This document shows positions 35,398 to 60,900 of a DNA stretch of 64,000 nt, piece by piece; the first letter of the stretch is position 1; the number at the start of each line of letters is the position of its first letter. Below the pieces are notes generated by a model. The model saw only the letters and a program-made list of their open reading frames with translations, was not told where the DNA came from and ran no database searches. Origin of the DNA: Monocercomonoides exilis PA203 (taxonomy: Eukaryota > Protista > Preaxostyla); the NCBI GenBank assembly GCA_001643675.2, contig LSRY02000044.1:434001-498000 (forward strand). The letters run 5' to 3'. A program made the position numbers and the translations under genes.

Positions 35398-38300
35398 ATG
35401 TTTTCTTTTTCAATTATTCCAGTTAGGGAAAGCACAACTAGAGTTAAAAATACGACCATATGTACAAGTCCATCTTTTTTAGCTGTTGGCGTATCAACTG
35501 GCTCAATTTATCTTTATAAATATGGACAGTATACCACGCCTTCCATTCTTTCAGTAATTGCCGAAGCTCCTTCTATAATGACAATTTCACCAAATGAGCA
35601 ATTAATTGCAATAGCGACAAAGACGACAGTTTATATTGCTGATATTTCGAAAAAATCCATTGTACAAACAATAACAAATCACAAATCAGAAATAACTGCT
35701 ATAGCATGGGGTTTCATAACTTATTAATTGTTGGTACTATTTTTAACATCATTATTGACTTATTATTATTTTGTATTTAGGTCAACGACCATTTCGAAGA
35801 GAAGTTCCTGTTCTTTTAAGTGGGGATTCAAGTGGCTTTGTATATTTAACAAATCCAACTTCACTTTTAAATGCAACTTCGTTGCTTTATCAATTTGAAT
35901 CAGGAGTTGTTTCACTTGACGCTTGGGACAGTACACATTTTGTTGCTTCCTCATTTAATCTCGCTGTTGTTATTGACACAAAGAAAAATGAAGCTCATCA
36001 AATGGGGAATCAACCTCGCAAGGGAGCTCAAGGAGCTGTATTCGAGAAATTTACTGAAGAATGGCTAAGTGAAGCCGATGTTCCTCTTGGAAAGATATTT
36101 GCTGCAAGACCGGGTACCAATCCATTACGTATGTGGGTTGCAGATTCAGAAACGGCAAGAGTTTTAGAGACACTTAAAATGACTCCGCCAATGCAGGTTT
36201 TATCTCCTTGCCATCCTCTATCTGCCCCTGCTCCATTTTCATCTCATTTTCACGCTTCATCACAAACTCCTTCCACTTCATCATCATCATCTTTAACTCT
36301 TTCTTCCTCAACACAGAAGCCTTCAAGCACACCTCAAGCATCATCAGCCACTCCCTCACAATCTTCACCAGCGCCATCAGCAGCACCAGAAAAGCCCCAA
36401 ATACCTCGTCCTCCGCTGTCACTTCTGCTGTACAGCCACACAGCACACACACTTGTCTCGTGGATTCCTGGCGATCCTGGCCATCTTCTGGTGATTGAGC
36501 TGCAGAGGAGAGGAAGAGAACCAGAAAAAGAAAAAGAGAAAGAGAAAGAATCAGCTCCTTCAGCTCCACAGTCACCTGTTCCATCAACCCAGCCATCTTC
36601 TTCGACACCTTCAGCCACTTCTTCCTCTCCACCCAGTTCTTCATACAATGCATCGCCAGCCCCATCAACTCCATCAACTGCTCCAGTCACAGCCAGCAGC
36701 AGTGCAAGTGTGAGTGGGAGTGGGCTTATCGGGCAGGTGCGTCTGTGGACGGTGCTGCCGTGTCTGTCGCGTGTGTGTGTGTCAGAGACAGAGGTGTTTG
36801 TGCTGCACGGGCAGAGCGGGGCAGTTGGGGTGCTGAAGGCGTCGTGGGTGGAGAGGGAGATGGAGGAGAGGAGGAGGCAGAAGGAGGAGGAGGAGAGGAG
36901 GAGGAGAGAGGCAGAGGAGAAGAGGAGGAGAGAAGAGGAGGAGAGAGTGAGGAGAGAAAGAGAGGAAGAGGAGAGAAGAAGAAGAGAAGAGGAGAAAAGA
37001 ATTGAAGAAGAGAGAATAAAAGCAGAAGAGGAGAGGAAGAGGAAAGAGGAAGAGGAAAGAAGGAGAAGAGAGGAAGAAGAGAAGAGACGAAGAGAAGAGG
37101 AAGAGAGAAGAAGGAAAGAAGAAGAAGAGAGGAAGAGAGAAGAAGAGGCGCGTCGGATTGAAGAGGAGAGAAAGCGAGCAGAAGAAGAGAAGAGAAGAGA
37201 AGAGGAAAGAAGAAGAATAGAAGAGGAAAGGAAGAAAGAGGCAGAGCGGAGGAAGAAAGAAGAGGAGAAGAGGAAAGAAGAGGAAAGAAGGAAGGAAGAA
37301 GAGAGAAGGAAAGAAGAAGAAAGAAGAAAAGAAGAAGAGAGGAAGAGAGAGGAAGAGAGGAAGAAGAGAGAAGAAGCATTGAGAGAGGAAAGAAGAAAGA
37401 AAGAAGAGGAAGAGAGAAAGAGAAAGGAAGAAGCGAGAAAGAGGGCAGAGGAAGAGAAGAGAAGAGAAGAAGAAGAAGAGCGGAAGCGATTGGAGCAGAT
37501 TGAGAGGGAAAGAGAAGAAGAGAAGAAGAGAGAAGAAGAGAAGCGAAAAGCAGAAGAGGAGAAGAGGAGAAGAGAGACGATTGTTATTAAAGTGGCAGAG
37601 CCTGTTCAGTCATTCGAGGAAGAGGAAGAAGACACAGCGCCTTCTAATCAGACATCATCATTGGCAAATCAAACTGCTTCTTCATTGTCGCTATCTGCAT
37701 CCACTTCATCCATTTCCACTTCATCCTCACCCACTTCATCTCCTTCTATTTCCTTTTCTCCTTCTCCTTCTCTTCCTTCTCTTCCTTCTCTTCCTTCCTC
37801 TTCCTCTTCTTCTCCATCCTCTTCACCTTCTTCTTCTTCTTCTTCTTCTTCCACAATCCCTTCCTTTACTCCTTCCTCTTCTCCTCCTGTCTCCATCCGT
37901 TTTATTCCTCGATCTGCTGCGTCTTCCTCCTCCTCGTCTGCATTCACAGGAATGGAAGGGGCAGAGAGCCAGCTGGAAGAACAGGCAGATTTGGACTCGA
38001 CTTTTCTGATCCCGCCGAGAAAGAAGCGGAGCAGCGAGACAAGAATTGTTGCTATTTCTCCACTGACATCATCATCATCATCACTATCATCAACCATCTC
38101 TTCTTCTCAAACAGACCCAACTCAGCTGATTAATCAGCCAGTGCCATTTGCACAGCCACTTGGGACGATGCCATTTCGCGTGTCTTATCTGCCTTCTCCT
38201 CCAGCCACTCCTTCTCCTTCGTATTCTCCTTCTTTCACTCCCTCTGCTTCACCACACGCACCCACCACACTTCAAAGCCAGCCATCTACCCCTCTTCTAT

Positions 38301-41300
38301 CATCATCCTCTTCCTCTTCCTCTTCCTCTTCCTCTTCCTCTTCCTCTTCTTCTATTTCAGCCTCTTCCATCGCAAAGAAGCTGAGCAGCGTGCTGTTTTC
38401 CACCGCTTCTTCACAGCCATCCACATTCAGCGTGAGCAATCTGCCTTCTTCGTCTGATGCTTCGTCTGTTGTTGTGCCGCAGCTGATGAGTCAGTCTTAT
38501 TCTTCTGGTGTGAATGACACACAGGAGACAAGTGGGCTGGCAGAGGACGAAGGAATGAAGGCATTTCACGAGATGCTTTTGGTGAGGCAGGCTGAGGCGA
38601 GGAAGAAGAAGGAGGAGAAGGAGAAAGAGAAGGAAGAGAACAAAGAAGAAGACAAAGAAACAGAAGGGAGTGAAGCAAATATTAATCAGAACAGTTCTAT
38701 TTCATCTTTATCTGATTTGAAGGCGAATGCAGCTGAAAAGAAGGCCAGTGCTTCAAACAGACAGCCATATGCCAATCTCTTCCAGGAAATTAAGAGTCTG
38801 TCTGCTGTTTACAACACACAAGTGCCTGAAATACCAGAAATGCCTTTGTCATTTGCTGTTGTGGAAGATGAAGAGAAGATGAGAGAGAAGGAGAAGGAGA
38901 AAGAGAAAGAGAAGGAAATTGATAAAAAAACAGAAGAGAAAGACAATAAAATAGGTGCTTTATCAACAAACTCAAGCACAACCTCTTTGAAAGAAGTGGA
39001 TTCAGTTACAATCTGTGTTGATAAGCCCAACCATTCTCAATCGTCATTTGGGTCTTCTTCTTCTTCCTCTTCCTCTTCATCCTCTTTCACTTCAAGTTCT
39101 TCATTCGCCCTTTTGAAAGGGCTGACTGACGAAGGTGTGATTGAAAAGCGAAGACTGAGAAAAGAACAGTTGAAGATTACAATTGAAGAGAAGTCTGCGA
39201 AAGAAGAAGAGGCAATTGTGATTGATTTGGATGCGCTGCTTGAAAAGAAGAGGAGGAAGAGGCAGATTCTGGGAGAAGATGAAGATGAAGAGAGAGAAGA
39301 GGAGAAAGAAGAAGGAGAGGAAGGAGAGGAAGAAGGAGACGAGAAAAAACACGAAGGAAGTAATAATAGCGATAATGAAGGTGATGATCGAATACAAAGA
39401 AGAAGAGAACGACAAAAGGCAAAAGAAGGAGAAAGAAGACAGAGAAATTGGAGAAAGAAAAGCGATGCCAAAAGAGAGAGCAGAAAGAACAAGAAGAAGG
39501 CAGAGATTGAATGGGAAGAGCAGCTGAGGAAGGAGTGGAAGAGGATGCTGTTGATTGAAAAGGAGGAGAGGCAGAAAAGGAGAGGAGAATTAACAGAAGA
39601 ACAAGAATTGCATTTGGAAGAAGATGAAGAAGAAGAGAAAGGAGAAGGAGGAAAGGAGGAAATTTTGATGGAATTTGGGTATTGCGATGGAGAAGACTTG
39701 AGAAAACAGCTTGGAGATGACAGAACAGAAAGGGAAGGAAGCAGAATGAATAAGAGAATGGAAGATGACATTTATGCGCTTTCGAGTGAAGAAGAATCAG
39801 ATGATAATGAAAATGAACTGGAATTTGAACTGTCGCTGCTGAGGGAGGAGGAAGAGGAAGAGGAGAAAGAGGAGAAGGAAAAGATAGAAAGAGAAAGAGA
39901 AAGAGAAAGAGAAAATGAGGGGTTGAAACGGGAACAAGAAGAAAATGGAGAGAAAACAGAGAACGCTGAGAAAGAAGGAGATGCAGAAGAAGAAGAAAGG
40001 AAGAAAGAGGAACTTGCAAAGAAGAAGATGGAAGAGGCAATGAGGAAGGAGAGGAGGAGAGAAGAAAGAGAAAGGAAGAAGGAAGAAATGAGGAAGCGGA
40101 AGGAGTTTAAGAGTATTGAGAAGAGATGGAAGGAAGAGAAGAGGAGGAGAAGGATGCAGCAAGTGGGGAGGGTTCAGCATTGGATGTTTGTGAGGAAGAT
40201 GGAGAAGATGGCAGAGGGACTGATCGAGGAAGTGGGGAAAGAGAAAGAGGAAGGAAAAATAAGAGAATTTAATGATGAATTAGACAAGTCATATGAAGAA
40301 GAAACACAAAAGGAAGACGAAAAAGAAAGCGAACTGAAAGAGGAAGAACTGAAGCCACAACCTCTTGTGCAGGATGAGGAGGCAGGCAATGCAGTTGAAG
40401 CAAGAGCAAAAGAAGGAGCTGCAACAATGTCAACAACGGAATCTGCAGCACATCAGGATGTATTGAAGCATTCTTCAATGGATTCTGATGATTTAAATGA
40501 AGGTGATAATGATATTAATAGCAATGGCATTTCAATTTATGTTCCAATGTTTTCCTCGAATCCATTTTCAATTTCATCATCATCAGCATCGACAACAGTT
40601 ACATCTCCTTCTTCTGAGCACCAAAACCAATTGGAAAATTCATTATCTTCTTCTTTTTCATTGCAGCCGATGCTTCTTCAGTCTCCTCATGGAATGCTCC
40701 AACAATTATTTGAGAGTTCTTCAGCCTCTTTAATTTCAAGTCAATTGGCTTCAGTGAACAAAAAGTCATCTCGATTTTTGGCTTCAGAGACTGAAGTATT
40801 TGAGTTCTGCTGCACTCTGTTTCCTTCCATTCGTGAACGATTCCTGGCACAAGTGAGCAGAATCATGAGTGCTGGAGAAGAAGAGGCGAAGCAAAAGGAA
40901 ATAACTGAAAGAATGAAACAACAGAAGATTGAAGGCGAAGGAGAATTTGACAGAAATGAGAATGAGAATGAGAAAGAGAAAGGGAACAGCGAAAATGAGA
41001 CAGGAAAAGGATCAAGCACGATATGTGGAGGAAATAGCGAAAAAGCAGTGAGGATAAGCAAGAGTGTACCAACGATGACAATGCAGTTTGTTGAAGAGAC
41101 CATTCGCAGACAGGAAATTGAGAGTGAAATGAAACAGATGAAGGAGTTTCATAGCAACAACATTACAAACAATAACCATTATGAAGCGATAAATGATAAT
41201 GCAATTGAGAGAAAAGGAGAGAAAGACAGAGCAGATGAAGCACAATTATATGAGAATGGAAGTGGTATTGTACCAGAGGTTGATTCAGCAATGACATTCC

Positions 41301-44300
41301 GCAGTGGAGTGAAGGTTTGGAGTGCTTTCGCAGGAGCATTTAGTTCGAAGGCATCAACTTTTTCTCTCAACGGATCAAACAACTCAACAGTCTTTGCAAT
41401 TTCTGGTAACATTTTTGGGCCGAAGAACATGAACGAAAAATCAGCAAGCTATTCAGGCTATTCAAATGTGCAATCCAGCTGTTCTTCACACAAAACGCAA
41501 GGAGAAGCAGACGATGATTGCTCATCTCCTCTTCACAACACACGACTTCTCCGTGCAATGGCTACACATCTGGCAGCTTGGATGTGGGGCTATGAGCGTT
41601 CAGCTGCATATTGTTCTTCATTTTTAAGCAGCTTTATTTCTGAAAGAGAATTAACAGATGCATTGGAAAAGAGAATATTAGATCTGAAACATTTGGCGAG
41701 CGGAGATGTTGTTGGCACGTGGGATCATTGCCGAAAAGCGCAGCTAAATACTCTTTGCCTGGAGCTTCAGATTCCTCATCCACAAATGATCGCCTTTAGA
41801 GGAACTAACACCGCACAGAAGACAGAAGAGAAAGCAGGTGAGAGAGGATGCTGGCCAATGGCTAAGGCAGATTGGACAGATGCTGTCTCACTTTCGTTTC
41901 TGATGTGCACTTATCCTGTGATTGATGTTGACCAAGCGTTGCATGTGTGCTGCTTAAGATCGCACTGGATGAGTGTGGAGTTTCTTTTGTATGAAGAGAA
42001 AAGGAGGAAAGAGGAAGAGAAGAGGAAGAGAGCTGAAGGGAGCATTTGGGATGAAACCGAGACTGACACTGAGATTGATGGGAATGCTGTGCTGAATATG
42101 GAAGAGAAAGGGATGAAAATGCTGCGATTTGAGTGCATTCCTCGCTCAGAGCTTGGAACAAGCGGCAATTTGGATGCAACAAATCTGTGCGGAGCTGTAA
42201 CTGGCCAAGGGTTCCAAAGGAGTTTATTCAATGTTGCATGCAAAATAGCATTGAGCAAGTTATCATCGAATGAAAATCGACAAATCTCTAATTTTGCATC
42301 AGTTGCTTTCAATTTGAGCCAACACGATTTGAGTGATTCTTCTGCTGCGTCTTCTTCCTCCTTTTCTTTGAAAAATGTTGGCTTTATTTGCCCTGTTGCC
42401 CCACGTTACATTGCCACTTTAACAAAATATTCTTCAGGTAATGAAAATTGCACAAATTTACAAGCTAATGAGGAAACATTCAAAGAGATCACGTTTTGTC
42501 AAATGCTGAACATTCTTTCAAGCAAATTAAAGATGTTTTGCTCGGATAAGCAGAGCCAAATCAAAATGCTATCGAACTCGATTCAATCCACTTCAACTGC
42601 ATCACTTCACTCTCCACTCACTTCAATACAACCTCATTTCGATATATCATCATCTCTTTCTTCCACATCACTATATTCTCTTCTGTCTTCAGCTGCTCAT
42701 CTCTTCCCTGTGCTTTCTCCAATGCATGTTATCAACTCTCTTGGCGGATTCAGCTGCAAAGCCATTCGAATGCTGTGTGCTTCCACTCCTGGCAGATTAC
42801 CCAGATTCATTTGTGGAAGGCAGCGGCTGGCGGCACTCAGCTGCGGAGATGAGAAATGCAACTGCGAGGAGATTGCCAGCATTGTGGTTCTGTATCTGCA
42901 TCTGGCTTTGTCTTGCTCTTCAATGCAATGTTGCTCAGAAAATCATTCTCTCAGTTGTGGTGGCTCAGCATATTCGAGAGTGATGTGGCTGCTTTTGGTG
43001 TTTTTAGTTGCAACAAGCAATGTTTCTGGAAAAGCTGTATTTGCGGAATCGAGGAATATTCAATTTGAAGAACAGATTTCTGAAGCAAATGATAAGTGCA
43101 GAACATGCGAAGAGGATCATTCTTCGTCTTTCTTTAAAAATGACTTTGTCCTTAATCCAATTCGTGAATTTCTTCCATTTGGCAAGCCATTACCTTTGCA
43201 ACAACTTGCTTTGGATGAAGAATCAGATATAATCAAAAATTCAGAAGGAGAAGATGAAGTTGGAGTTCTGTGGAGGCATGCAAATTTCATTGATTGGATA
43301 CTTGAAAGAATTGTAACACGCTTTTCAGCACAGAGGGAGAAATACAGCGGAAGGATGTGGAAAGTTGACGTTGAAGGATTTTGTGATGGAGAATGCGAAG
43401 AGAAGAGGATGAAATTGGAAAAAGCAATTGAAGAAGCAGAAGAAGAGATAAGTGATCTTGGTGGAGAAGGAGCGTGGGAAGGAGAAAATAGCGAAGCAGG
43501 AGTAGTTTTATGTGGAGATTGGGGTAGCGATGAGTGGGAAAGTGACGAATGGGTGGTATGTGGGGTAGTTCATCTTCTTTCTGCAATTGGGTATTGGAAA
43601 GGCGTTGTGATGGTATGCACAGCGACTGAACAGTTATGTGCAGCGATGATCGTTTCAATGCTGATGCAGGATTTTGATTGCTTGGAAATGATCGCGACAA
43701 GAGCTGATTGCACTCCATTGATAAGTGATTGGATTCTGCTGTTTCGGTTTGCATTTGGAGTGAAGGCAGAGAGTAGATGGAATTGCGTATTTAAGGAAAG
43801 AAGATTGAGAAGCGAGAAGGAGAAGCAGTTGAGGAGTGGGATTGTACAAAGTGCAAAAGCAAGTTCCACATTCACTGATGCTGAAAGGGAAAGCAGTACG
43901 AAAATCTCAGAGCAAGAAAAATCCAAAGAGTTGAAATATTCAATAGATCCTCATTCGAATTCGGAAGACTGCTCAATCTCTGCGAAAGGGCAGGATCAAA
44001 TACGCAGAATTTGTACTCATGGAGGAATGATTTTACCTGGTATAACTGATTTTCATGAGCACGGATCTCGACTCATCTGGATTGCAGAGAAAACACTTGG
44101 AATGGAAAGTACTCTTTGGTGTCTGCTTTGGAGCGGATGCAACGTGTCTGGTGCAGATTTGCGGAGTGTTATTATGGCAATGTGGAGCAGTGGAAGACGA
44201 TCAGCTCAGCAAAGAAAGTGCTATTCAAGCGAATGCATGTACGATGATGATATGCTTAATGAGGAGAAAAATGAAGATGATGAGAGGAGCATAGGAGGAT

Positions 44301-45268
44301 GGAGCGGAAGAGGAGGAAGTTACTACGAAAATGGACTGAAAGGAAAAGAAAGCATGAAAGACAAAATGAAGTGGCAAATGCTTTGGAATGTGGACGGTTT
44401 AATGTGGAGCAGAAATAAAAAAAGGGGAAGGAGCATGGACGGGAGTTATGAGAGAGGAAGCATCGGAGAATTTTTATTAAGGGAATTGAGAGCTTCCGAG
44501 GAAATGCAGAGAAAGAGCTTAGCAAAGAGGGACAGTTATATGGGAAAGCAGAAAGTTCTGCACGGAACATGGATGAGCGAGATGGGAGATGAGCACGAGC
44601 ATGAAGATAAGGAGATTGAACGTGAACAGATTGGGCAGAACATTAAAGAGCAAGAGCAAAGCAAGCTTGATGATTATGAATTTGATAGAACATTTGAAGA
44701 GAAAAACGATCAAAAGAAAGAAAAAGAGAATGGAAGGAACAAAAGATTGAATGTTCCAGAAGATCCAGTTAAAGCTAAAGATAGAAAATTGAAGAACACT
44801 GAAACAAAAGAAAACAGTGATTTTGCTGATGAAAGTGGAATTTCTGTTGGCTGCATTAATTTAAACAAGTGGATGAAAATTGGATGCACTTCAAAACTTC
44901 CAAAATGGAACAGACTCACTTCCATTCAATCAAAAATTACATACGATGAAGACGTTACAAAAGAACTGAAAGATGTTATAGAAATCGAAAAAAATAGTGA
45001 AGAAGAAGAAGAAGATTTCAGACAAACACAAACATTAGAGTTAGATGTTCAAAAGAGTTTAGCAAATAAACCGACAAACGCAGATTACGAAAGTACTATT
45101 GGAAATGATAACAGAGAAAATAAAATAAGCGATTCTCAATTTGAGGAATGGAAAGATAACGAATTTGCGCTTTATGACGATTGCTCATTTTTCACTGGAG
45201 TGGAGGAAAGAGATAAACAGTGGGGCATGCTATATCCTTCTTCAATTAATTTTGCTTCCTCATTTTAG
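35398..45268 (+). CDS. HPS5/TECPR2-family WD40 beta-propeller protein (BLOC-2-subunit-like), ~3270 aa with very large low-complexity insertions
   Basis: Exon 1 35398-35710, intron 35711-35780 (GTTTCA...TAG), exon 2 to 45268. Motifs FLAVGVSTGSIYLY, HKSEITAIAW, SGDSSGFV, VVSLD, GNQPRKGAQGAVF and KIFAARPG..RMW follow the HPS5/TECPR2 N-terminal propeller (GNKERDGEYGACF, IYCARPGSRMW). A tiny upstream exon near 35345 is possible. Confidence 0.8.
36850..37578 (+). repeat. Near-pure purine tract encoding a ~240-aa ER/K single-alpha-helix-type segment
   Basis: EEEERRRR/EEEKRR/RRKEEE periodic charge blocks. The DNA is almost exclusively A/G on the plus strand. Confidence 0.85.
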
Positions 45269-46002
45269 CTTTAGAGAGATTTGTTTACAATTTTTTATAC
45301 AATTTTTATTTTCTTTTATGTTTTTTTGTGAATGAGTGAATTAACAAAGAAAAAGAAATACTTCAATATTTTATGTGATTAAATGGTTAAACATATAAAT
45401 TTCCTTTAAAAAGAAAATAAGTTCACATTTTTTCACAAAAAAAGAGAGCAAAATGGCTTTTTGAAAATTTAAAGAAAATACTCTTTGAATGTTCTCAAGG
45501 AAGATTATTAAAAAAGCTTGTTATCCATCAAAAACTGCGTTTTCAAACGTTACAACAGCAACAACAACAAATATAATTTCAATTCCAAAATAACTTTTCT
45601 TAAATAACTATTTGAATGGTCATTTGCTTGATGGTATTATTTCTCAATAAACTCCTTGGATAACACATTTCTCACCTTCACTTTCCATTTTTCAACAATT
45701 TTGATTTCACAAAGTATATGTTTGAACCCAAACAAATTTCATTGGCGATAGAGAAACGTCATGTTTCACAAAGAATGCAAACCTCATTTCGATTGTTTAT
45801 AATTATTAAAAAAAGTCAAAATGAAAAACTTTAAAAAATTGAATCTTTTTGATAACTCAAAAATTAAACTTGAAAAATTTCATTTTACAACAGATTGAAA
45901 CGCTATTCGATGATTTGACAAAAGCAAAACACAAATAAAAACGATCACTCAATAAATCAATTCTCTATTAACTCAAAATTCAAAGAAAAACGATTTTCGA
46001 AC

Positions 46003-46939
46003 TCACCATCTTGTTTGAGGGCAAACGTGATTGTACTTCTGTGCATGAGCAAGACTGTGATTTTGGGTTCGGCAATTCTTCCCCCACCAGCAATCTGGCT
46101 TCCCTTTCATTGCAGCAGGAATTAAATTAGGATCAATTTGCTCTCTAAATTTCAAGAAAAGTACACCCGCAACTTTGTTGAAACAATAAGTACAGCATTC
46201 AGTATTCTGCGTTATTTTTATGTTTGTTTGAGGTATTTCAAAATTTTTCCAATTGTCGTCGATTTCAACATTTTGTAAAATTTCTTTCCAAGCTTGACCT
46301 GGTGTGACATGTAAAACATCTTTCATTAATACTCTTAAATTTTGCGTTTCAACTTCATTTTCCATTAAAATTCCAATCGGCAGATCGTTCAAAACTTTTG
46401 AAGACAAAGGTTCACCTGGAAATACCCCACAACGTTCGCACATTTTTGTTCCCGGTGCAGTCAAAATATTAAATGGAATTGGAGTAATTTTCTTCATTGT
46501 AAAAACATCTTTATTCTTTCCTGGATTTGCTTTTATGCCGTCATGATTAAAATGGACGGTGCCGGCTCCAGAAATGGTTGCAGTAACCAAACTGTTAAGT
46601 TCATCGTCCGCTTTTATTGCTAAAAGAATGTGACGTGGACACACTCTCTTTGATTTCATTTTCTTACAAGCTCCCCCAGCTAATTCTAGTATTTCTGCAG
46701 CAAGATATTCCTAATGAAATGAATTTAAAATATTTTAAAAATTGAAAGTTCAAATTCAAATTCAAAAAATCCATTCACAATATGCAAACCAGAACTCCTG
46801 CTGTGTAAATAGCGGCTGACGGACTAACTCTGGATTTGTTATATAAATAATTCTTTAAATAACGATGAATACGTCCAACAGGAAATATTAGTCCTGATTT
46901 AATAGAACGTGAATGAATTCTTGCCTTTGGATGATTCAT
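46003..46939 (-). CDS. H2A.Z-type histone variant fused to CHFR-like cysteine-rich domain with C-terminal PAR-binding zinc finger (285 aa, 2 exons)
   Basis: Exon 1 46939-46790: [50 protein letters not shown]. Phase-0 intron 46789-46711 (GTTTGC...TAG). Exon 2 46710-46003 starts [50 protein letters not shown] and runs without a stop into ...CCTYC...[11 protein letters not shown]...[32 protein letters not shown]. Confidence 0.92.
46027..46092 (-). other. PBZ (poly(ADP-ribose)-binding zinc finger) motif, CHFR type
   Basis: [22 protein letters not shown] fits C-x-(Y/W)-G-x-x-C...H-x5-H and closely resembles the CHFR PBZ (CYWGRNCRTQ...HAMKFNH). Confidence 0.9.
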
Positions 46940-48962: not shown

Positions 48963-51900
48963 TCAACTTAATTCAAAATCGTTGAATGAGCCAGAAAAGC
49001 GTCCTTGGCTTATAATTCCTGAATTAAAGATTTCTGAAAAGCATTTTTCACAAGTATTAACTTCTTTTCTCTTTGCTGCAGAAACGCCAACAAGCGAAAA
49101 TGTCTTTTCACTCAGACAATTTGTACAAAACATGTTTCCGCACACTCCACATGCGCTTCCGCTTGTAAGGCCTCCCAATTTCTTTCCGCACTTGAAGCAA
49201 ACAGTATCTTTTTCTTTCTTCTCTTCTGAAAAATCTTTTCTTTTGAATTCAACAGGCATCAAAACATTGATAGCGCTAACTCCATTCCCGCAAACGAGGC
49301 TGAGGCCGTCTTTTGAGGAAAACAGTTTTGTGACGCTTCCTCTGCTTTTGACCATAAATGGAATGAAGTTTGATAAAACGGATTTATATGTGTCGTTCTG
49401 AAGATGAATGGAAGGGTGAGGATTAAGATCAATAAACATAAGAGATCCATTCTTGCGAAGGATAGATAATGATTCGAATACTCGACAGAAAGAAAAACGA
49501 GAAACCAATTTTTTTGGAATCATCGAAGAGCTAATTTCATTGCAAGATGGAAATTGAATTTTATCAATATGATTTGAACTTTGCGTCAAATAGTGATCAT
49601 ATTCAGGCAAATCTTCATTTGGTGTTAATATTCGAACTTTCACTAACGAAACAGGCTTTGAAGCAGAACCAAAAAGTGCCCCCTTTCTAAAATACCTTTT
49701 CAGATCTGCAGAAGAAGAGAATGTGGCTGAAGAAAAACTAAAAGATGATCGAGAAGGCGGAGGAACAGGATATTTGCGAAGGTCGATAGAAATTGTGCTT
49801 GGATCAAATGTCAAATGCTTTCGACTTGTCCTGTTGGAAATAATAGAAAAAGCAGAAGAAGGTTTTTCATCAGAGCAAATGAAGAGCTCTCTTTCCACAT
49901 CGCGCTTTTCATTCAGTTCTTTTTCTGCTTCGGGCATCTTGATGTTCCAAATAAGTTCTGTCTCTAATTCCCTTCTGCTTTCAGACACCTGAGCAGTTGC
50001 ATGCTCAATGCAATTGCTGAAGATGTGCTCAACGATACAGCTGCTGATTTCAGAAGAAGAAGAAGCAGCTCTCCAAAACAGAGAGATCGGAAGGGAAGAA
50101 GAATAAGGGAAAATGGAAGAATCAAGAGATGCTTTTGAGGAAATTGAATAATTTGAAGGAGAGATTGAAAGATCAACTTCATCAGATGTCTCAAGACATG
50201 TTGATGACAAGTGAAGAGAAGAAGATGAAGCAGCCGAGTAATGTTTGTCTTTGGTCAAAAAATTGTTTTTCTTCTTCTCTAATTGAGTTTCAGACGAACT
50301 CTGACTAACATTTCTCATTTTTGTTTCATTCTTCATAGCAATATCCAAATAACAAGCAGGCAAACATTTGGAAATATTCCATATAACTCCACCTTTTTCT
50401 GCATTTGAGACGATATGTGCGACCTGTCGCCAACTCAATCCTTTTAACTGTGGCCGTTGAGCTCCTTCAAAAACAAGCACAGAACCTTTTGATGTGCCAA
50501 TAACATAACACGAACTAATGGATTTTTCATGAACCTTGCGATATTCAGCTAAATATTCAATGACTTTTTCTCTGATTTCTTTCAATGAAAATTCTGTCTT
50601 CTGCTCTTCTTTTTGTTCATCTTGACTACTAGAAATCGAAAGAGAATCTGCTTCATATTCGTTTTTGTTCTCTTCATTTTGTTCTTTTGGAGAATCTATC
50701 TGCTCCATATCTATATTTTCTTTCCCCTTTTCAATTTCTTCATCATGTTGAGTTTTAGTTTCTCCGAAAAAGTCAAGCGACTTTATGCTCAGATTGCAAC
50801 TTCTTGATTTTTCCAACCCTTTTCTTGAAATGCTTAACGCTGTTATTTCCTCGTCATCTGATACAACAGCTTCTCCACAAATGACAGCAGAGCCATTTGA
50901 ATTCCACTTCCAAAGCTTATTTCCATTGCTTGCAATGATCGAAGTTGAACCTTTTTCAATGATGAGCGTTTCTATTGGATAGCTTTCAGGTAAATGTATT
51001 GGAAGTGTTTCGAAGTTAAACATGCATTCGTTTTCATCAACAGGTGCGTCTTTTTCAATTGTCTCACAATTGTTTCCATTGATATTGTTCATTTCCTCGA
51101 ATAATCCTTCATTTGAATCAGATGCGCACCGATCGTTCATTAATGAGAAATTTCTTTTTGTCTCGATATTATTGCATTCATCATATTCATTTTCGTTTCT
51201 CATCAATTGACTTTTATGTTCGGCAACAATATCCCTGAGTGTATTTGTAACAATGCAATTTGCGTAAAGTGGTCTACGAGAAACAACAAGATCGTTTGGA
51301 AGACATCCACCTGACTTGTTTTTGACTTGAGATCCGTTTGCAATGCAAGCCAATGGCAATTCATTTCCACCATTTCTCCACTTTGATTCATCAGCATTTT
51401 CGCTGTCAGTTCGAAATTGAGCAATTTGGGGAGTTGACAAGCTCGGCACAACAGACACACACCAGCGCAGCTGCAGCCTCTTCATATCCCACACAACAAC
51501 CATTCCGCTGCAATCACCAGAAGCACAAATTCCGGCTGAAGAATCAGTGGCGATGGATATTACAGGATGACGATGAGCATATAATCGAGCAATTACATCA
51601 CATCGCATTTCATTGAACAAAATTTGAGGCTGAACAAAGGATGCAGTCTTTGTTGAGATAGAATCCAAAAATTGATTGGAATTTTGTCTAAAGATAGATT
51701 GGATGTCTGACTTTTGATTCAAAAAGTTTGGCGATGAAGCTTTCTCTCTCTCTCGTTCATTTGCGCCTTTTACAGACAAAGCATGCACCCACTCTTCATA
51801 ATCGTTGTCCTCTGGAGGGAAGAAGCTGGATGAAGATTCAGAAGGAAAAGGAGAATTCCTGAATATGAATCCTGACGCCGCCCTCCCTATAAACCGCTGC

Positions 51901-54900
51901 TGATAAATATTGTTATAATGGCGAATGATTGAGGCACCTGGGCCCATTACAAGATATGTGTGCTTTATTAACGAAGCAAGTGACTGAGGAGTGTTTGATA
52001 CTGATGGGGAGGACGGAGCAACATTTGAAGAATGCGCAGAAGGCGGAGAAGTGACAGAGTGAGGAAGGAGCATTGACACAGCAGATGTTAAAGTCGATAA
52101 TGAAAGAGAAGAAGCTTGACGAGTTAATAGAGCCTTTCTTGAAAAAGACATAGATCTGACCAAACGCTTTGGAGGCGAGCTTGTTGAATCTTTTTCTTCA
52201 GCCATCTGAGCTGAAGCGAAAAAGTTTTGATTGGCTGAAGTTGTTTGTTTTGGGGTTTGAAGAGAAGATGCATCAAAAGATGCGCATCCATTTTTTGGTG
52301 GAGAGACTTGTGATGAATGTGCTTCAGGCATTAGATATGAATCTGTTGAGTTATTCATTTGCATCGAAGACGGGAGAATTGAAGTGTCAGCTGAAAATTG
52401 ATTCACCATTCCCTGATTCGAAGGTGTCGATACAGACATATACCCCATCAGATACGATTCGTCGTCATTTTTGCCTTCATCATAGGATGAATTCAACTGT
52501 GAGAACTTTTGTTGTGATGAAGGGCTAAAGCTATTCTTATCAGGAGCAGACATCTCATTCTGTAGCACTTTGACAAGACCTGTCATTGAACTATCCCACA
52601 AGCCGAATCCCAGAGACATACCGCTCCTCTTCTCAATCGAAAACAATGTTGAATACAAACTCTGCAACAGTGACTTATCAGCAGCAGAAGAAGACAGCTG
52701 ACCTAGCGAAGCAGCTGCCATCTGAGCTGCTTCCTGAGCGTCTGCAATGTCTACAATTTGAGCAGTTTGTGACTGCTGCAGTGAGCGTGCTGATGAATAT
52801 GAGTGCTGTTCGAGCAATGCGCGGTCAATATCAAATCCAGAACCAACTGCAAAGCCGTTGACATCCACAGACACAATCTCTCGATTGCCGCTGAGTGATC
52901 TTATGCTCACGTCTTTTGAAGCATTCTTTTTGACCTTTCCTAAAGCCATTTCCCCTAATTCAGCAGATAAAGATGGATTAATTGTTATATATCCGTAACC
53001 TTCAAATTCTTCTTTTCTGTTTTTCCGACTCTTTCGTTCACATATCCCAAATCCATTCGTTCCAATTTTCCATTTCATTCCTGTGCTTGCCCAATCGCTT
53101 AACTCTCCACCAAACATGCCTCCAAACGCTTTTGCTCGCTCTCTCTCTTTCTGTCTCCTTTTCTCATCTCTCTCTTTTTCCTTTTCCTTTTCCTTTTCCT
53201 TTAGCTCACCACAAACTGTTGCACCAACGAGCGGAGTAACTGTTGACAGTACAGAAGAGCTGGGGAAGAAAGGAGAGCAGCCAAATAGTGTCTTTTGCTG
53301 AGACTCATCCGACGTTGTGAATCTCCACACAGCCACAACACCATCTTCACCGCCTGTGATTAGTGTGAATCCAAGATCAGATGACGTATGCGTCTTGACT
53401 TCCTGTCTACTTTGTGACGAATACAAATCGCTTTTGGAAGAGTGGGAGAATTGGTGAAGGCCGACAGGATGTACCATTGTTTTGTATGGGTGTGCAGTTG
53501 ATGTGGATGTGGGAGATATAAACACATGTGTCGATTGCGAAGGAGTGGGAATTGACAACGAAAATTCTTCCTGTTCCTTTGTTGGTAATGTTGACCGTAT
53601 TGGACTAACAGAATATGAAAGAGAAGGAGAAAGAATCTTTCGCGAAACAGTTGAAGAGAATGATGTTGATCGTGAAACAGGCTGATAATTTGTATCAGAA
53701 GCTGGCATTGCAACTGAAGAAGTGCGAGATTGGATTGATGATTTGGACGAAGAATCTTCTGGTAATTGCTGAGGGCGAGAAGCTTCAGATGTTGATGAAT
53801 CAAGAGATGGATGAGAAGATACATCTTCTTTTGTTGTTGCTTCTGTTATTTGAGTTGTGTCAACATTTTGTGCTTCTTTTTGAGCTTCTGTCGCATCTAA
53901 CTGTGCTTCACTTTCAGAAGATGAAGATTGTTCATTTGGATGAACTTCTCTATGCTTGATAGTAAAAGGAGACATTGTTGATAGATCATCTGTCTGCAAC
54001 GATATTGGCAAAGACAGCGCATTCATTGAAGGAATTATGAATGATTCGTTCGCTTCTCCATCTTCAATACTTTGTTGTGTATGGCTCAATGATAGGTCAT
54101 TAGTCAGATCTTCTTTTGAACTTTTGTCATTTGATGAATCAGAAGAAAAATCGAGAGGAAGAGGAAGCGGTGGAGTAGACAGAAGGTCATGCTGTTTTGC
54201 CTCTTCTTCTTTCACTAATTTTTCAATATTTCTTTTCTTTTCGTTCTCTTTCTCTGTATTAAGTTTTGTATTAATTTCTGTGTCAGGTGATGAAGAGCTT
54301 GCTTGCTGTAATGATTCCGTTGAAATTTCATCACCAGTGCTATCAGAACCAATGACAAGCATGCAAGATTTTTCTGTTATGCTTTTTTTATTTTTTTCTT
54401 CGTTTGCCTTTCTTTTTGCGATCTTTGAGCTTCTTATCTCCTCTACAACACTCAAAAGATAGTCACTTCCACCAAATTGAGCAAAATCCACCTGCTTCTT
54501 TGGAAGCTGAGGAACAGAACCTGTTTTTAAAGAAAGACTCGATGAAAAATCAACAAAAAGAGTGTCAAGTGTCAAAAGCAGTGTCCGTGACAGCCCCTTT
54601 GCGATTGTGCGATTTGTGAGAAGAGAAATAAGTTGCTGGGCTGTTTCATCGTTGCTTTCCTTTAATTCTAAGTCAACTGCAGATTGATGAATATTGCTAC
54701 GTGAAATCGACTGAGGAGAGAGTTTTCTTTTTAATTTGAATAAATGTTGCTCAGAATCACAATCCTTATTATTCTTAACTTCATTCGTTTGTACTGAAGG
54801 ACCAGCAAACAACTGAGACAGCATGTCGAATGAGGAGTGAGGAAACAGCATTCCATTGTCCATCAATTTCAATGACTTCACGCTCAGCTCACACAACAAC

Positions 54901-57900
54901 TGGCTCTCCTCTTCAGAAATCTCGTCCACAATCGCATTCTGCTTTTCCCAGCCAATTCCACAGCCAACGTAAGGAAATATCTCGCTTTTGTCTTTAGCCT
55001 GCACAGCTCCTCCATAAAACGCAGCTGCTGTGATTGCGCCATTGTGCATGTTTTCGTGTACAGACAGGACTGACGATGAAGAAGTAGAAGAGCACACACG
55101 AAGAGCATTGTCACTCCCTGCAAAGCTGATATACATTCCTTTGCTGTTTGGTATGAAAATGCGTTTTGGACCAATGCTTTCGATTCGATTCTGAAGAAGA
55201 TCTGTATTCTGTTTGACTCTAATGTCAGATATTGACAAAGACAACGAAGGATGAGGCATCTGAGAAGAAAACTGAGTCACTTGCGGTAAAGACGATGATG
55301 ACATGGTCAGTGCCGATGATTTCAAAGGCAAATATGGATCAGACGGTGCTGCTGCTGAAGACATTGATGCTGAGCGAGCGGACGTCAACGAAGAAAGAAC
55401 TCCAGAAGCACTCGCTGAAGAAGCTGATGAAGGAAGTGATTGCGAAAAGCTTTTAACAGAAAGAGCATCAAGCGGATAATCAAACAAATTTGGCTGAGGA
55501 GCATGCACCTTCTTTGAAGGATGGGGTTTGAGAAACAGCTGAGAAGGTGTTTGACCGAAGTTGTTTATCTGTGCAATAACACTCTTTTTAGTGATCTTGT
55601 CATTGATTGAAGCAATGTCAACAGAACCTTCATATGTCAGGAAATGGAATGTGTTCAGTGCTTTCACTGCTTTTGGTCCTCGCTGTAGGCATCCGAAGAT
55701 GAGATCAATCCAGTGATTGAGATTCTCAGAAACATATTGTGATTCAAGAGCAGCTCTGTGAATGGCTATGAATCTCTCAGGGTCTTTGTGTGCCCATTGA
55801 GGCAGAATGACATCATGTGTGGGTGTGCCAATTGGGGGAGATGGTAAAATAGCTGATGAGATTGACGAAGGCAGCTGATCAAGAGATAAAAATGATGAAA
55901 GAGATTCTGTGTAATGATGACTGACTCTGTCTTTTGATAAGTCAGAAAGGTTCTTTTGTTTTCTACTGTGCCTGTTACGACGGCGAGGTCGAAGCCTTTG
56001 CGGATTTGAAAGATACATCTTAGTTTTTTCTCTAATCAAAGACATCACAGAAGAAGAAGTCGGTAGCGCTGAGCTTGGGGATGAATGAGAATCTGATAAA
56101 GACTGTTCATTTGACGAAGGAAGGACAAGTCCACTTTCCAGAACGGATGTTCGATAACCCAGTTGTGCAAATGGCAGATGAGAGCGGAGGAAATTGGCAG
56201 TTGTGAAGAACTCTGGAATCAGCTCTTTAAAGTCATACACAAATCCTTCGCTTGCGCACTGCCAAACTTCTCCAACTGAATGGAATATTCTGTCTGGCAC
56301 ATCAAACTTTCCACTGTGAATGTGCTTTTCAAGAGTGGTATATGGCTCAATTCTAGTCAGATAGAAAAGCACAATCCCTGCATTCGAATAATGCGAACCG
56401 AAATGATACGGCTGAGACTGGAATGTGAAGTTGATCGAGGGAGAAGGTATTGTGGGAACTGATGAAACAAAGCCAGATCCTGATGAAGATGAAGCTCCTG
56501 ATGATTGCTGATTTGATATTTGCGCTTTTTCCTTGGTTCTTTCTTTCATTCGTTCGTTTTGAAGCTGCTTTAAAGTGGTTTCAATATCATGCCATCTTCT
56601 GAAGTTCTGCTTTGAACGGAAAAACGATTGGTCTTCAATAACTCGATTGGTGTTCACAGCTTCTGAATGGATGGAGTTTATCAGCAGCAATGAATCCGCT
56701 GGAATTACTATAGGCTCATCAGACGTTCCACTCATTCCGTCTCCGCTCTTCAAAGACTGTACAGCATCCATCTTAGCAACTGTCAGCATGTTCTCAAATT
56801 GGTCTTTCGCTTTTTTCCTTCTTTTCTCAGTCTGCGCTCCCATTGGCTTCGAAAGATCTCTATAAGAATCTTTGTTTATCAAATCCAGATCAGGAGACAT
56901 TGAATTATACTCCTTCAGAACCCATGGAAACACAGGGTATTGGTTCAGATCTTTCATTGTTCTACCTGCTGCTGTGTTCAAAAGCATTAAATAGCGGAAG
57001 TTGGACATCTGCCCTTTTTGCCATTTTTCTGTTGCTTCGTTCAAAGTGGTGAAACGATAGTACCCGTCTTCATCTTGTTCGAGCAATGGAGTCGTTCCAG
57101 AAACAGATGCAATAATGCCAGGCTCTGCTGAGGCTGCAACAAACTCTTTGTGATGAGGTTGATAATACGGATTTAGAGCTGACACAGCAATTGATAGCTG
57201 AGTGTATGCTGCTTTTCTAACCAAAGCATCAGGGAAAATGAGAAACAGAGAAGTTTGTGTTAGAGAAATTAGCTCAAGTGCTGTAGGCATCAGAGTAAAG
57301 CGGAGAGGCTGTATTTCAATGATGTCTGAAAGCTGATATGTTTGAGTGAACGGTAGAAGTTGATGACATCCACTTCGTTTAGCTAAATCAGATGATTGAA
57401 GAACATGGAATGCTCGACGTAATGTTTCAGTCCCATCTGCAAGTGAGTTGAATATGGAAGAGAAATCTGAGTTAGACAAAAGCTTTGAAGTCAAATCAAT
57501 TCCTTCCTTGATATCTGTTGTGGAATTATAAACACAATTATTTCCATCAGTTGCACTGACAATTGGTGAAGAAGAAGATGATGAAGCACACATTGCACAC
57601 TCACAAACAGTTTTAAGCTGATGCTGAACAAATTCATTGTAATATTTCACAAAAGAACTTGAATTTATACAACCACTATCTTCGTATTTTGAAAGGAAAA
57701 GCATTGAAGCTATTGCGAATAAAGAAAATGGTGCATGAATCAAAGCAGAATCAGGATGATTAAGAGGATACTTATTTATTTCATTACCAGCTTTATTCGT
57801 TCCTTTTTCACTTTCAGAGGATAATAAGAAATTAGAGTCATCATCCAATCTTTCTTCTTCGTCCTCAAAGTAACTGCTGATTGAGTTTGTCTTTTCATTT

Positions 57901-60900
57901 CCATTATTATTATTTCCAAAATCGTGAAATTCAGAACAATCGTTTCCAATAACTTTTGGCTTATCATCAGAAAAGTTTGATCTTTGAATTTCTTTTTTCT
58001 TCTTTTCTTCCAAATGCTTTCTTTCCTTCTTTAACTCACTCATCCAGTCATGCTGAGCTGCTATCTTGATAAGTCTCTTTGCAACCCTCTTCGCATCATA
58101 CCAAATCCGAACAGGTTCTGCAGAAGGAAGCACCACACAATCAGGAGACATTCGCAGATCGTCCACAACAACAGCAGTTGTCTCAGTGACAAAGAGAACT
58201 CCGTCTGTTGCATCGACTCCGCCAACCAGCCGAGACACATTGCTCATAAACAACAAAGGCGAGGAGAAAAGAGGGAAGAGCAGAGAAGAAATACTACGAT
58301 TCAAGAAGTCAAGATCTGGAGAGCGAATTGGATAAAAGAGGGAAGAAGAAGGAGGATTTTGTAAGTAAAGAAATCGATTATTTGGATGGTAGCTGTGTAA
58401 AGGCGGTTGATGTTCGAGCTTCTGTGGTAAAAGCTCAGATGATTCCTCTTTGGATTTTGCAAATAAATCGACGCAATCAGACAATTGAGTGGTCAGACTG
58501 TCATTATTCTTTTCTTCTTCTGAAACTTGAATTAAATGATTTCCTTTTTGCTTTTCACTAACATTAAGATTGGAAGATTCCATTTTCAATGCATTTTTCA
58601 GAAGATAAATGTATGATTTGTCTGTATTTCCTTCAACTGTCTCTTTGTTCAGATATTTCAAAGGACCAAACTTCGAAGGAATATTGCCAAATGAAAGTTT
58701 ACAATCTTCAGTTGTTCCTCTTTCTCTGCACAAAGACTGTGCAACGAGTGGAGATTGGTTTCGATACACATCGCTATGCCAGCCAATCAGACGTTCTTCA
58801 TCATCTTCAATCAAACGACTCAATAGCTCTTTTTGCAGCAACGATGCAATCAAATCTTTTCCTCTGTCATTCGAGTTTCGATCCGATACCTCTTTTTCAT
58901 CTTGACAACTACAGCTTTCTTCTTCTTCTGACATTGATGAACTCATATCATCCTCCTCTTCTTCTTCAGACGTGTCTTCATCATATGATTCAGAATCTAT
59001 GCGTTTATCTTTGTGCAACAATCCTTTCGCATTTGAATAATTTTCTTTTTTGCTGTTCTTTCTGAATACAATATCCAAGCTATCACTAACAAGCGATAGA
59101 AGATCATCCACATTCATCATCTGAATTCCATATACTCCTCCTTCGCTTTTGACAGTGTTCATTTCATCAATCCATTTTGAGTGTGCCTGCGAATGCATCG
59201 ACAGAGCAGAAGAAATCCACAAGCTGTGTCTCCGCGCAAACATCAGCTGCACTCTTCCAATCAGCGCTGCTCTGTGATATCCAGTGGACGATGCAATCAT
59301 GCGCGCTCTGTTGGTCTTCGTGCTCCAACGCCTCAGTCTCTCTTGTGAACGAGAAAGTGCTGCTAATCGAGTGTTTCTGTTGGTCTCCCATCTTCTTTTG
59401 CACAAAGCAAAAATGACAGCTGCTATACCACCAGGAGAATGAGTCAGGCATTGTCTAATGGAGGCTTCTTTTCTCTGGAAATAACTGGAAAATTCATTTG
59501 CCTTACAGTTTTGTACGATAAGCATGTCCATTCCTTCTGTCCAGCAATCCATCGCTCCTTCACAATAAGCCTCCAATCCTTGCTTTGTGAGGAACAACTG
59601 AGAAAGTGACTGCAGAAAAGCTTGATATGTCATTGAGCTTAGACTGTCAGCTGTTCCAGGAATTATCGTGGGAACGGGCAATCCATATACGTTTGACGAA
59701 GAAGTAGCCATAGACAATGAGCGCCCCTGTGGAGTGTAAAATGACTGTTCAGATGGAAGCATCGAAGTTGATGCAGTTAAGAATGATGAACTTGGAGTTT
59801 GAGACTGTCCATTTCTCGAATATGTTGGAGTCATTGAAGACATCGACGGAATACGAGAGATCGCATTTTGCGATGATTGAGGAAGAAGAGAATACAAACT
59901 TGTATTCGCTGAACTCACAGCAGGCTCATTAGTGTCTTTGTCTTCCTCGCGCCTTTCCAACTGAGCCATCAATTCCTGGAGCGAAACGAAGTCCTTGTTG
60001 AGTGAATCTTGATAAGGAAGAGGCACAGAGCAGCACTCTCTCATCAGCTGCATTGCTGTTGGGATGAGCATCGACGAGGCAACAGGAGCTTCTTCCACTT
60101 CGCTTGTGGGCTTCACCAAAGCAAGAAAACTCGACCAATCTTTTTTCTTGTTTGTTGCTCCGCTTTTCTCTTTTTCTTTCTCTTTCTCTTTCTCTTTCAT
60201 TTTTTCTCTCGCTTTGAGCTTTTCTTTCTCCTTCTCTTTCTCCTTTTCCTTTTCTTTGTCAACTGGGAAAAAGAATAGCTGTTGAAAGATGCTTGTGTAT
60301 GTGACAGCTACAAAAGACAGAAGCGAAAAGACAGCTTTTGAAAACCATTCATCTTTTTCGTACAAATCATTCATTGACAGTGCAAAAGCAACAACATATG
60401 CAATGAATGGAATATCCTGAATTGTTATGTTTTTATCCTTCTCCTTCTCCTTCTCCTTCTCTTTTTTCAGCCATTTGACTGAAGCAGTTGAAGGGTTGTG
60501 CCAAATGTCTGTCACATTTTCACACAAAAGAACTGAATTAAGTGAGGAAGCTGACAAAGCATTGGTTGAATGTGGATTCAGTAAGGAATGCATCGAACCT
60601 GATTGAGAAAAAATCTGAGTTTGATGTGAACGATCAATTGATTGTTCTTTCAGAGTGGAACTATGCTGCGATGTGGAGGCACTTTGAGAGGATGATTGAG
60701 ATTTTCTAAAGAATGAGAATCCTAATGTTTTGGATGACTGAGAACTTTTGGATGAGGAGCTTGATCCAACAGATGCTTTTGAATTACTTTCGCTTTCTCG
60801 TTTTCCTCTTCTTTCTTTCACAGCAGCAGAGTCCGAACTGGAAAGAGGAGCGGTGAACGAAAAGAGAGGCAGACGCAGTGAATAAATGAGTGTTATCAAA

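Follow-up and report, generated by a model that had tools for sequence, protein, structure and literature searches.

A 64,000-nucleotide stretch of the genome of the oxymonad Monocercomonoides exilis PA203 (contig LSRY02000044.1, positions 434001 to 498000; C41:434001-498000 in the 82-Mb M. exilis assembly that was searched; called the window below) carries on its minus strand a gene in which a histone H2A of the H2A.Z type is continued in frame by the C-terminal zinc module of CHFR, a checkpoint protein and E3 ubiquitin ligase, namely a shortened cysteine-rich domain (CRD) and a PBZ finger. This fusion gene is very probably genuine. In CHFR, the PBZ finger recognises chains of poly(ADP-ribose) (PAR). 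To our knowledge, an ADP-ribose-binding domain is otherwise known from a single histone, macroH2A, the role of which is still debated. By analogy, the fusion would be a functional counterpart of macroH2A with a reader domain of unrelated origin.

The gene consists of two exons, and the following features were defined in the window.

46939-46790, minus strand: exon 1, Met1 to Leu50 (50 aa, by translation); its product (46790-46939) comprises a very short N-terminal tail, helix alpha1, loop L1 and the start of alpha2.
46789-46711, minus strand: intron of 79 nt, GT-AG, phase 0, between '...GVL' and 'EYL...'.
46710-46003, minus strand: exon 2, 235 aa and a TGA stop codon, in phase 0 (by translation).
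46546-46710, minus strand: histone part of exon 2, residues 51-105, with the remainder of alpha2, alpha3, alphaC and the docking domain.
46447-46545, minus strand: linker, residues 106-138, predicted to be disordered and net basic (6 Lys, 2 Asp).
46111-46446, minus strand: shortened CHFR-type Cys-rich domain, residues 139-250 (Pfam zf-CRD, phmmer, alignment, AlphaFold2 and Foldseek).
46027-46101, minus strand: PBZ, residues 254-278 (Pfam PF10283), with Cys257, Cys263, His272 and His278 as ligand candidates.
46026-46003, minus strand: last seven codons, VCPQTRW, and TGA (46003-46005), by translation; CHFR proteins end at the same motif.
46002-45872, minus strand: 3' untranslated region (UTR) of about 100-130 nt, estimated from the ends of RNA contigs, which cannot fix the true end of the RNA.

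Joined together, both exons encode a protein of 285 aa which is identical to the deposited 'Histone H2A [Monocercomonoides exilis]' (P0001). The gene, MONOS_5715, is found under the name 'Histone H2A' in two NCBI releases, in UniProt and in EukProt, where its three Pfam domains are precomputed. In a preliminary description of the window, both exons and the intron at 46711-46789 had been placed from the DNA alone, and all these coordinates agree with the sequence, its translation and the deposited model. It was also rightly remarked there that the list of open reading frames (ORFs) misses the first 67 aa, since only 46003-46659 (218 aa, from Met68) is listed. Without splicing, the frame of exon 1 ends four codons inside the intron (ORF 46775-46939). 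Several features indirectly support exon 1 as a part of the gene: its H2A.Z-like conservation (55% identity to the corresponding M. exilis H2A.Z exon, ungapped, next to 54% for the histone part of exon 2), an open frame of 49 codons (with a probability of 0.016 by chance, given the local base composition), an inherited intron position, and an intact start codon and in-phase donor.

The histone half was recognised by Pfam as Histone at residues 10-83 (E 1.4e-7, over the gathering score). In phmmer searches against the PDB, exon 1 matched H2A.Z and H2A.V (E 2.8e-10 to 1e-8), ungapped at residues 4-50, and exon 2 matched H2A.Z (E 1.9e-15), ungapped over its positions 1-68. AlphaFold2 placed the histone helices at residues 21-33, 40-67, 75-84 and 86-97, the latter three with a predicted local distance difference test (pLDDT) of 72-93, and the best Foldseek matches of this model were H2A.Z chains (TMt up to 0.78). 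Alignment with the canonical H2A of M. exilis requires one gap at L1 and another at the docking domain, while alignment with H2A.Z requires none; relative to canonical H2A, L1 has one residue more and the docking region one fewer, which are the lengths of the H2A.Z type. In the alignments, the fusion has kept the docking domain, the residues of the acidic patch and the arginines with which H2A contacts DNA. The motif 'H-I/L-L-L-A-I' is common to the fusion and to M. exilis H2A.Z, where the aligned human and representative H2A.Z proteins read 'HLQLAI'. In front of the conserved HSRS...GL.FPV core, the N-terminal tail is limited to about 8 residues (MNHPKARI).

Phylogenetic analysis placed the M. 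exilis fusion inside the H2A.Z clade with a Shimodaira-Hasegawa-like approximate likelihood ratio (SH-aLRT) support of 100, of 99 when a second fusion from Blattamonas nauphoetae (described below) was left out, and of 97/98 in a careful tree of 33 rows. The latter was relied upon, as the search for a quick tree of 77 rows proved unreliable, constrained trees outscoring the free one. Moreover, the fusion and both ordinary H2A.Z genes of M. exilis share one intron position, at the codon boundary ...IL|EYL..., and none of the six canonical H2A genes of this genome has an intron at that codon. Given the ungapped alignment, the position in the clade and the common intron position, the histone half is, on sequence grounds, a descendant of the H2A.Z of this lineage, as the preliminary description had proposed with its H2A.Z-like assignment.

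The pairing of the histone half (residues 1-118) with H2B of M. exilis was modelled as a complex, which reached an ipSAE of 0.88, the best control reaching 0.00. This mark was attained by 51 of 78 solved complexes and by 2 of 108 mismatched pairs. The runs of this prediction agree in at least 92% of the contacts, with a pLDDT of at least 85 for the partner. Because H2A-H2B dimers have already been solved, the model shows likeness and is no proof of binding. Deposition of H2A.Z into nucleosomes is the work of SWR1-type remodellers.

Beyond the docking domain, the linker (residues 106-138) has no Pfam domain, and the AlphaFold2 pLDDT is below 50 at residues 101-138. The following segment was identified as zf-CRD at residues 150-242 (E 8.6e-6, score 26.5 for a gathering score of 26.3). 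This match covers positions 66-158 of the 158 of the model, that is the C-terminal 93, and about 65 N-terminal positions are gone. According to the alignment, the N-terminal Cys clusters of the CHFR CRD, and with them most of its cysteines, are absent; a 'CERC-G-V-F' vestige and the C-terminal helical subdomain with a CxxC (Cys223, Cys226) are retained. This helical remnant was modelled with reasonable confidence (pLDDT 66-85 at residues 166-250) and matches the CHFR structures 2xoy_A and 2xoc_A in Foldseek (E ~6e-5). With phmmer, exon 2 detected human CHFR in the PDB (2xoc and 2xp0, at ~2e-14), as did the C-terminal 161 residues alone (2xoc, E 1.1e-14), and the final 128 residues of the fusion share 43% identity with the corresponding end of the CHFR of M. 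exilis. In the preliminary description, a Cys-rich domain of about 145 aa ending in a PBZ had been announced. Its homology to CHFR is well supported by phmmer and Pfam; the Cys-rich part itself has to be restricted to the C-terminal 93 positions.

The PBZ finger scored 27.5 bits in Pfam (PF10283, E 3.1e-6) for a cut-off of 22.7, and a six-frame search of the genome for PBZ matched the same place (C41:480027-480101). The C2H2 signature [K/R]xxCx[aromatic]GxxC...HxxxYxH is present and aligns with the PBZ of human and M. exilis CHFR. Mutation of C623 and C629 in human CHFR (the PBZ* mutant) abolished the pull-down of PAR and PARP1 (PMC4741567), and both residues align to cysteines which are kept in the fusion. 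In human cells, recruitment of CHFR to PAR at sites of damage is due to the PBZ and not to the CRD (PMC3561977). No FHA, RING or macrodomain (PF01661) was matched by Pfam in the fusion protein, in line with the earlier proposal of a CHFR C-terminus devoid of FHA and RING. As these two domains are absent, the fusion is predicted to have no ligase activity. Judged from these comparisons, its C-terminal half is a cut-down descendant of the CHFR of the same lineage.

Transcription of the gene was investigated using Logan contigs, which come from four RNA runs that belong to a single study. Contigs of all four runs are colinear with the window on 45872-46670. They extend over the latter half of the histone fold and over everything downstream of it, namely docking domain, linker, CRD-PBZ, stop codon and 3' UTR, with 3' ends at 45872 (X2), 45892 (X4) and 45901 (X3). 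This colinearity across the domain junction excludes an assembly chimera between the two domains, which the preliminary description had named as a possible objection. The intergenic region upstream of the gene is not covered by RNA, which fits transcription rather than DNA carry-over. The RNA thus confirms one transcript across the histone/CRD junction and the stop codon; in the four runs no contig covers the intron, exon 1 or the 5' end, and no spliced RNA was found. Since contigs cannot define RNA ends, this does not contradict the gene model. A look-alike of a splice donor, TGgtgagt, is present at the stop codon; it was rejected as an intron, as the RNA contigs continue straight across 46003. 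Low-depth contigs (depth ~4) from two runs were also observed at 45745-46006, past the main 3' end, and could stem from an isoform with an extended 3' UTR or from a neighbouring gene by read-through.

The 5' limit of the contigs, at 46603-46670 in all four runs, lies near the internal ATG at 46659. One may ask whether the main product is made without exon 1, from a start in or after the intron and with translation from Met68, which would give a CRD-PBZ protein of 218 aa with half a histone fold. This is very unlikely: besides the inability of contigs to show RNA ends, two of the four fall short of that ATG, exon 1 has kept the features listed above (open frame, start codon, in-phase donor and 55% identity to H2A.Z), and the entire fold is found in one ORF in the Blattamonas protein.

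That second protein was found with HMMER in an exhaustive search through 1.84 billion cluster representatives, in which seven proteins scored below 1e-30. Besides the query and mispredicted tandem H2A proteins, the sole match over two domains was 'putative Histone H2A [Blattamonas nauphoetae]' (KAK2959521.1, P0122, 356 aa), so that the wider search for the H2A and PBZ architecture suggested earlier yielded one further case. It consists of an H2A fold, a complete CRD (positions 1-158 of 158) and a PBZ which, at 19.6 bits, is under the Pfam cut-off. Its identity with the M. exilis fusion is 31-38%. As it is encoded by a single uninterrupted ORF (L023, 5001-6071) without intron, the existence of the fusion does not depend on a splice prediction. 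Both proteins carry an intact C-x-W-G-x-x-C-R-T-Q ... H-A-Q-K-Y-N-H. No cluster of at least 50 members combining Histone and zf-CRD was found in the ESM Atlas, and a word-indexed search with the Blattamonas CRD-PBZ returned only the query.

These data also bear on the suspicion that the M. exilis gene is an artefact of assembly or annotation, or else a chimeric duplicate which is neutral or in decay. It is single-copy, known from two species only, with long branches and a shortened CRD, all of which would suit such an origin. Against it stand the colinear RNA over the junction, the intact frames, the conserved zinc ligands, the counterpart in another genus and the same gene model in two annotation releases, and the explanation is considered extremely improbable. 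According to the sequences, the fusion is kept in two oxymonad genera.

Whether both fusions go back to one event was addressed with each half separately. The Blattamonas histone half displays indels of the canonical and not of the H2A.Z type and shares motifs peculiar to oxymonad canonical H2A, 'YLAAVLEYL', 'ELQKLFG' and 'IIPSSG' (M. exilis 'TVPSGG'). In the careful 33-row tree it stands beside the canonical H2A of M. exilis, and direct sisterhood of the two histone halves was disfavoured by the approximately unbiased (AU) test (p 0.0175). A looser constraint, grouping the Blattamonas histone with all H2A.Z, was not rejected (p 0.22), nor was sisterhood of the fusions in the quick 77-row test (p 0.52), for which the tree search was unreliable. 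The CRD-PBZ tree contained five taxa, the profile search having delivered four CHFR-like proteins, and the CHFR of B. nauphoetae was not among them. Both fusions and the M. exilis CHFR group there at 80/87, with a trichotomy inside, and all three pairings within this trichotomy have a p-AU of ~0.38. The residues 'PAA' before the PBZ were considered as a derived character joining the two fusions and discarded, as human CHFR has 'PVA' there. No synteny was detected between M. exilis and B. nauphoetae apart from the fusion gene itself.

In the data examined, there is one fusion gene per genome in both oxymonads, which speaks for one capture event, after which the histone module diverged or was replaced. 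The discrete characters of the histone halves favour different histone parents. It is conceivable, if rather doubtful, that oxymonads gained PAR-reading nucleosomes repeatedly or by swapping of the module, Monocercomonoides via H2A.Z and Blattamonas via a canonical-type H2A. If true, a macroH2A-like device would have been invented repeatedly and convergently from unrelated parts, which would point to strong selection for coupling PARP signalling directly to the nucleosome.

The genome of M. exilis provides all the other components that had been suggested for verification, with separate genes for canonical H2A, H2A.Z, CHFR, PARP and PARG. Besides the fusion, it contains the six canonical H2A genes, which are near-identical, and the two ordinary H2A.Z genes; the 2019 M. 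exilis genome paper only counts 'H2A, seven variants'. A full CHFR (P0270, C11) is present with FHA, RING, the whole CRD and a PBZ. PARP catalytic domains were identified at at least five loci, one of them with the arrangement WGR-PARP_reg-PARP of the DNA-damage type, PARG at at least three loci, and PBZ at three loci. The two ordinary H2A.Z genes are located as follows.

C69:258351-258735: ordinary H2A.Z gene L010, intron at the codon boundary of the fusion intron.
C47:1582361-1582750: ordinary H2A.Z gene L011, intron at the same codon boundary.

Their proteins are nearly identical and read 'HLLLAI' in place of 'HLQLAI'. Each gene appears to have a further upstream exon, since its frame is entered from an 'ag' that precedes VQAQKAP....

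From these elements, a mechanism can be proposed. A duplicate of the H2A.Z gene of the lineage would have been joined to the C-terminal module of its own CHFR, that is the rear half of the CRD and the PBZ. The histone half would pair with H2B and replace H2A or H2A.Z in nucleosomes. Like that of other H2A proteins, the docking domain would emerge from the octamer close to where the DNA enters and exits, and the basic disordered linker of about 35 residues would keep the CRD-PBZ outside the core particle. There, the PBZ may bind PAR produced by WGR-type PARPs at damaged DNA, and nucleosomes containing the fusion may trap PAR chains or PARylated proteins; alternatively, these ligands may hold or reorganise the nucleosomes. 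On balance, this complete mechanism, in which a nucleosomal variant derived from H2A.Z presents its PAR-binding finger via a basic, flexible linker, is the likeliest reading and is considered somewhat probable.

Several observations weigh against it. The N-terminal tail is very short and without the Lys cluster typical of the acetylatable H2A.Z tail. On its long branch, of 1.3-1.4 changes per site, the histone domain also evolves much faster than core nucleosomal histones usually do. The score obtained with H2B may come from the memory that the model has of solved H2A-H2B dimers. The CRD is incomplete and its score barely over the cut-off, the PBZ was modelled at low confidence by AlphaFold2, and the intron and exon 1 lack RNA coverage as reported above. 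Finally, we infer both PAR binding and nucleosome entry from homology. The earlier interpretation is thus partly supported: all of the computable architecture is as proposed, and the reservations concern these two inferred properties, the intron and exon 1 unseen in RNA, and the fact that the protein was already deposited.

The rapid divergence of the histone half and the loss of its tail would also suit a soluble adaptor, in which the H2A-like half holds H2B, or a free partner of the H2A-H2B type, off chromatin and the PBZ takes this cargo to PAR at lesions, as a link between PAR and histone supply similar to APLF. The predicted pairing with H2B says nothing on entry into the octamer, and APLF joins PBZ fingers to H2A-H2B chaperoning (PMC6101569). 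However, the fusion has retained elements of H2A that are needed only within the nucleosome, namely its acidic patch, docking domain and DNA-contacting arginines, and such an adaptor appears unlikely. A different role has to be considered for the C-terminal half. With its shortened CRD, its poorly modelled PBZ and a Blattamonas finger under the Pfam cut-off, the CRD-PBZ could have ceased to read PAR and serve as a zinc-stabilised tail binding protein or nucleic acid, a chromatin mark independent of PARP signalling. The PBZ signature is nevertheless intact in both fusions, including the two cysteines essential for pull-down of PAR and PARP1 by human CHFR, and PARPs and PARGs are encoded in the genome, making this loss of PAR reading quite unlikely.

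The proposed nucleosomal PAR reader can be compared with known systems. With macroH2A it has in common an H2A-family fold, a basic linker, a globular C-terminal domain of a family binding ADP-ribose or PAR, and the coexistence with ordinary H2A and H2A.Z. The reader is a macrodomain in macroH2A and a CHFR-type CRD and PBZ zinc module in the fusion, in which PF01661 is missing; the parent of the fusion is of H2A.Z type, and its distribution is so far limited to oxymonads. The reader halves are analogous and not homologous, and in a protein database search macroH2A proteins matched the fusion through the histone part only. Towards CHFR, homology extends over the C-terminal 125-130 residues and both proteins end in ...NH-x-C-x-Q-T-R-aromatic, whereas FHA, RING and the first ~65 CRD positions are missing from the fusion. 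H2A.Z resembles it in fold, in L1 and docking lengths, in clade and in intron position, but the fusion is only ~55% identical, with a minimal N-terminal tail lacking the Lys cluster, cysteines in alpha2/L2 and a C-terminal extension of 180 residues. The Blattamonas protein displays the H2A fold, the CRD and the PBZ in the same three-part order, and differs by its 356 aa, the absence of introns, its full-length CRD, its canonical-H2A-type histone half and the lack of common synteny. In APLF, PBZ-mediated recognition of PAR is likewise coupled to histones; unlike the fusion, APLF is not itself a histone and binds histones via an acidic chaperone domain.

The preliminary description had presented the architecture as undescribed. 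In a literature search, no paper on an H2A joined to a CRD-PBZ was found and the protein is deposited only as 'Histone H2A', so that the claim stands for the literature; it does not extend to the databases NCBI, UniProt and EukProt, where the protein is available with its Pfam domains. The fusion adds a new class to the histone variants. As a second, independently built fusion of a histone with a reader, it offers a natural experiment on what is gained from a PAR reader attached to the nucleosome. It suggests that oxymonad nucleosomes may sense PARP signalling by a route other than that of macroH2A, and it bears on DNA-damage signalling in a eukaryote that is deeply divergent and has no mitochondrion. 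Should both fusions differ in their histone parent, they would represent a rare recurrent capture of a domain by core histones.

Some further genes were observed during this analysis. The third PBZ gene of M. exilis (L020:988-2280; C69, ~1920658-1921950) encodes a protein of 430 aa which is largely disordered, acidic/basic and Ser-rich and has one strong PBZ (37.9 bits) as its sole Pfam domain; from its sequence it could be an APLF-like factor recruited by PAR. One canonical H2A copy (L005, C38:462441-465746), an ORF of 155 aa, has a longer C-terminus ending in ...EDEDQQSQIM and may be of H2A.X type, judging from the SQ motif near its end. In the window, the fusion gene is flanked by two giant ORFs.

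48963-63932, minus strand: uninterrupted ORF of 4989 aa with a BEACH domain (326 bits).
35771-45268, plus strand: uninterrupted ORF of 3165 aa with an N-terminal HPS5-type beta-propeller.

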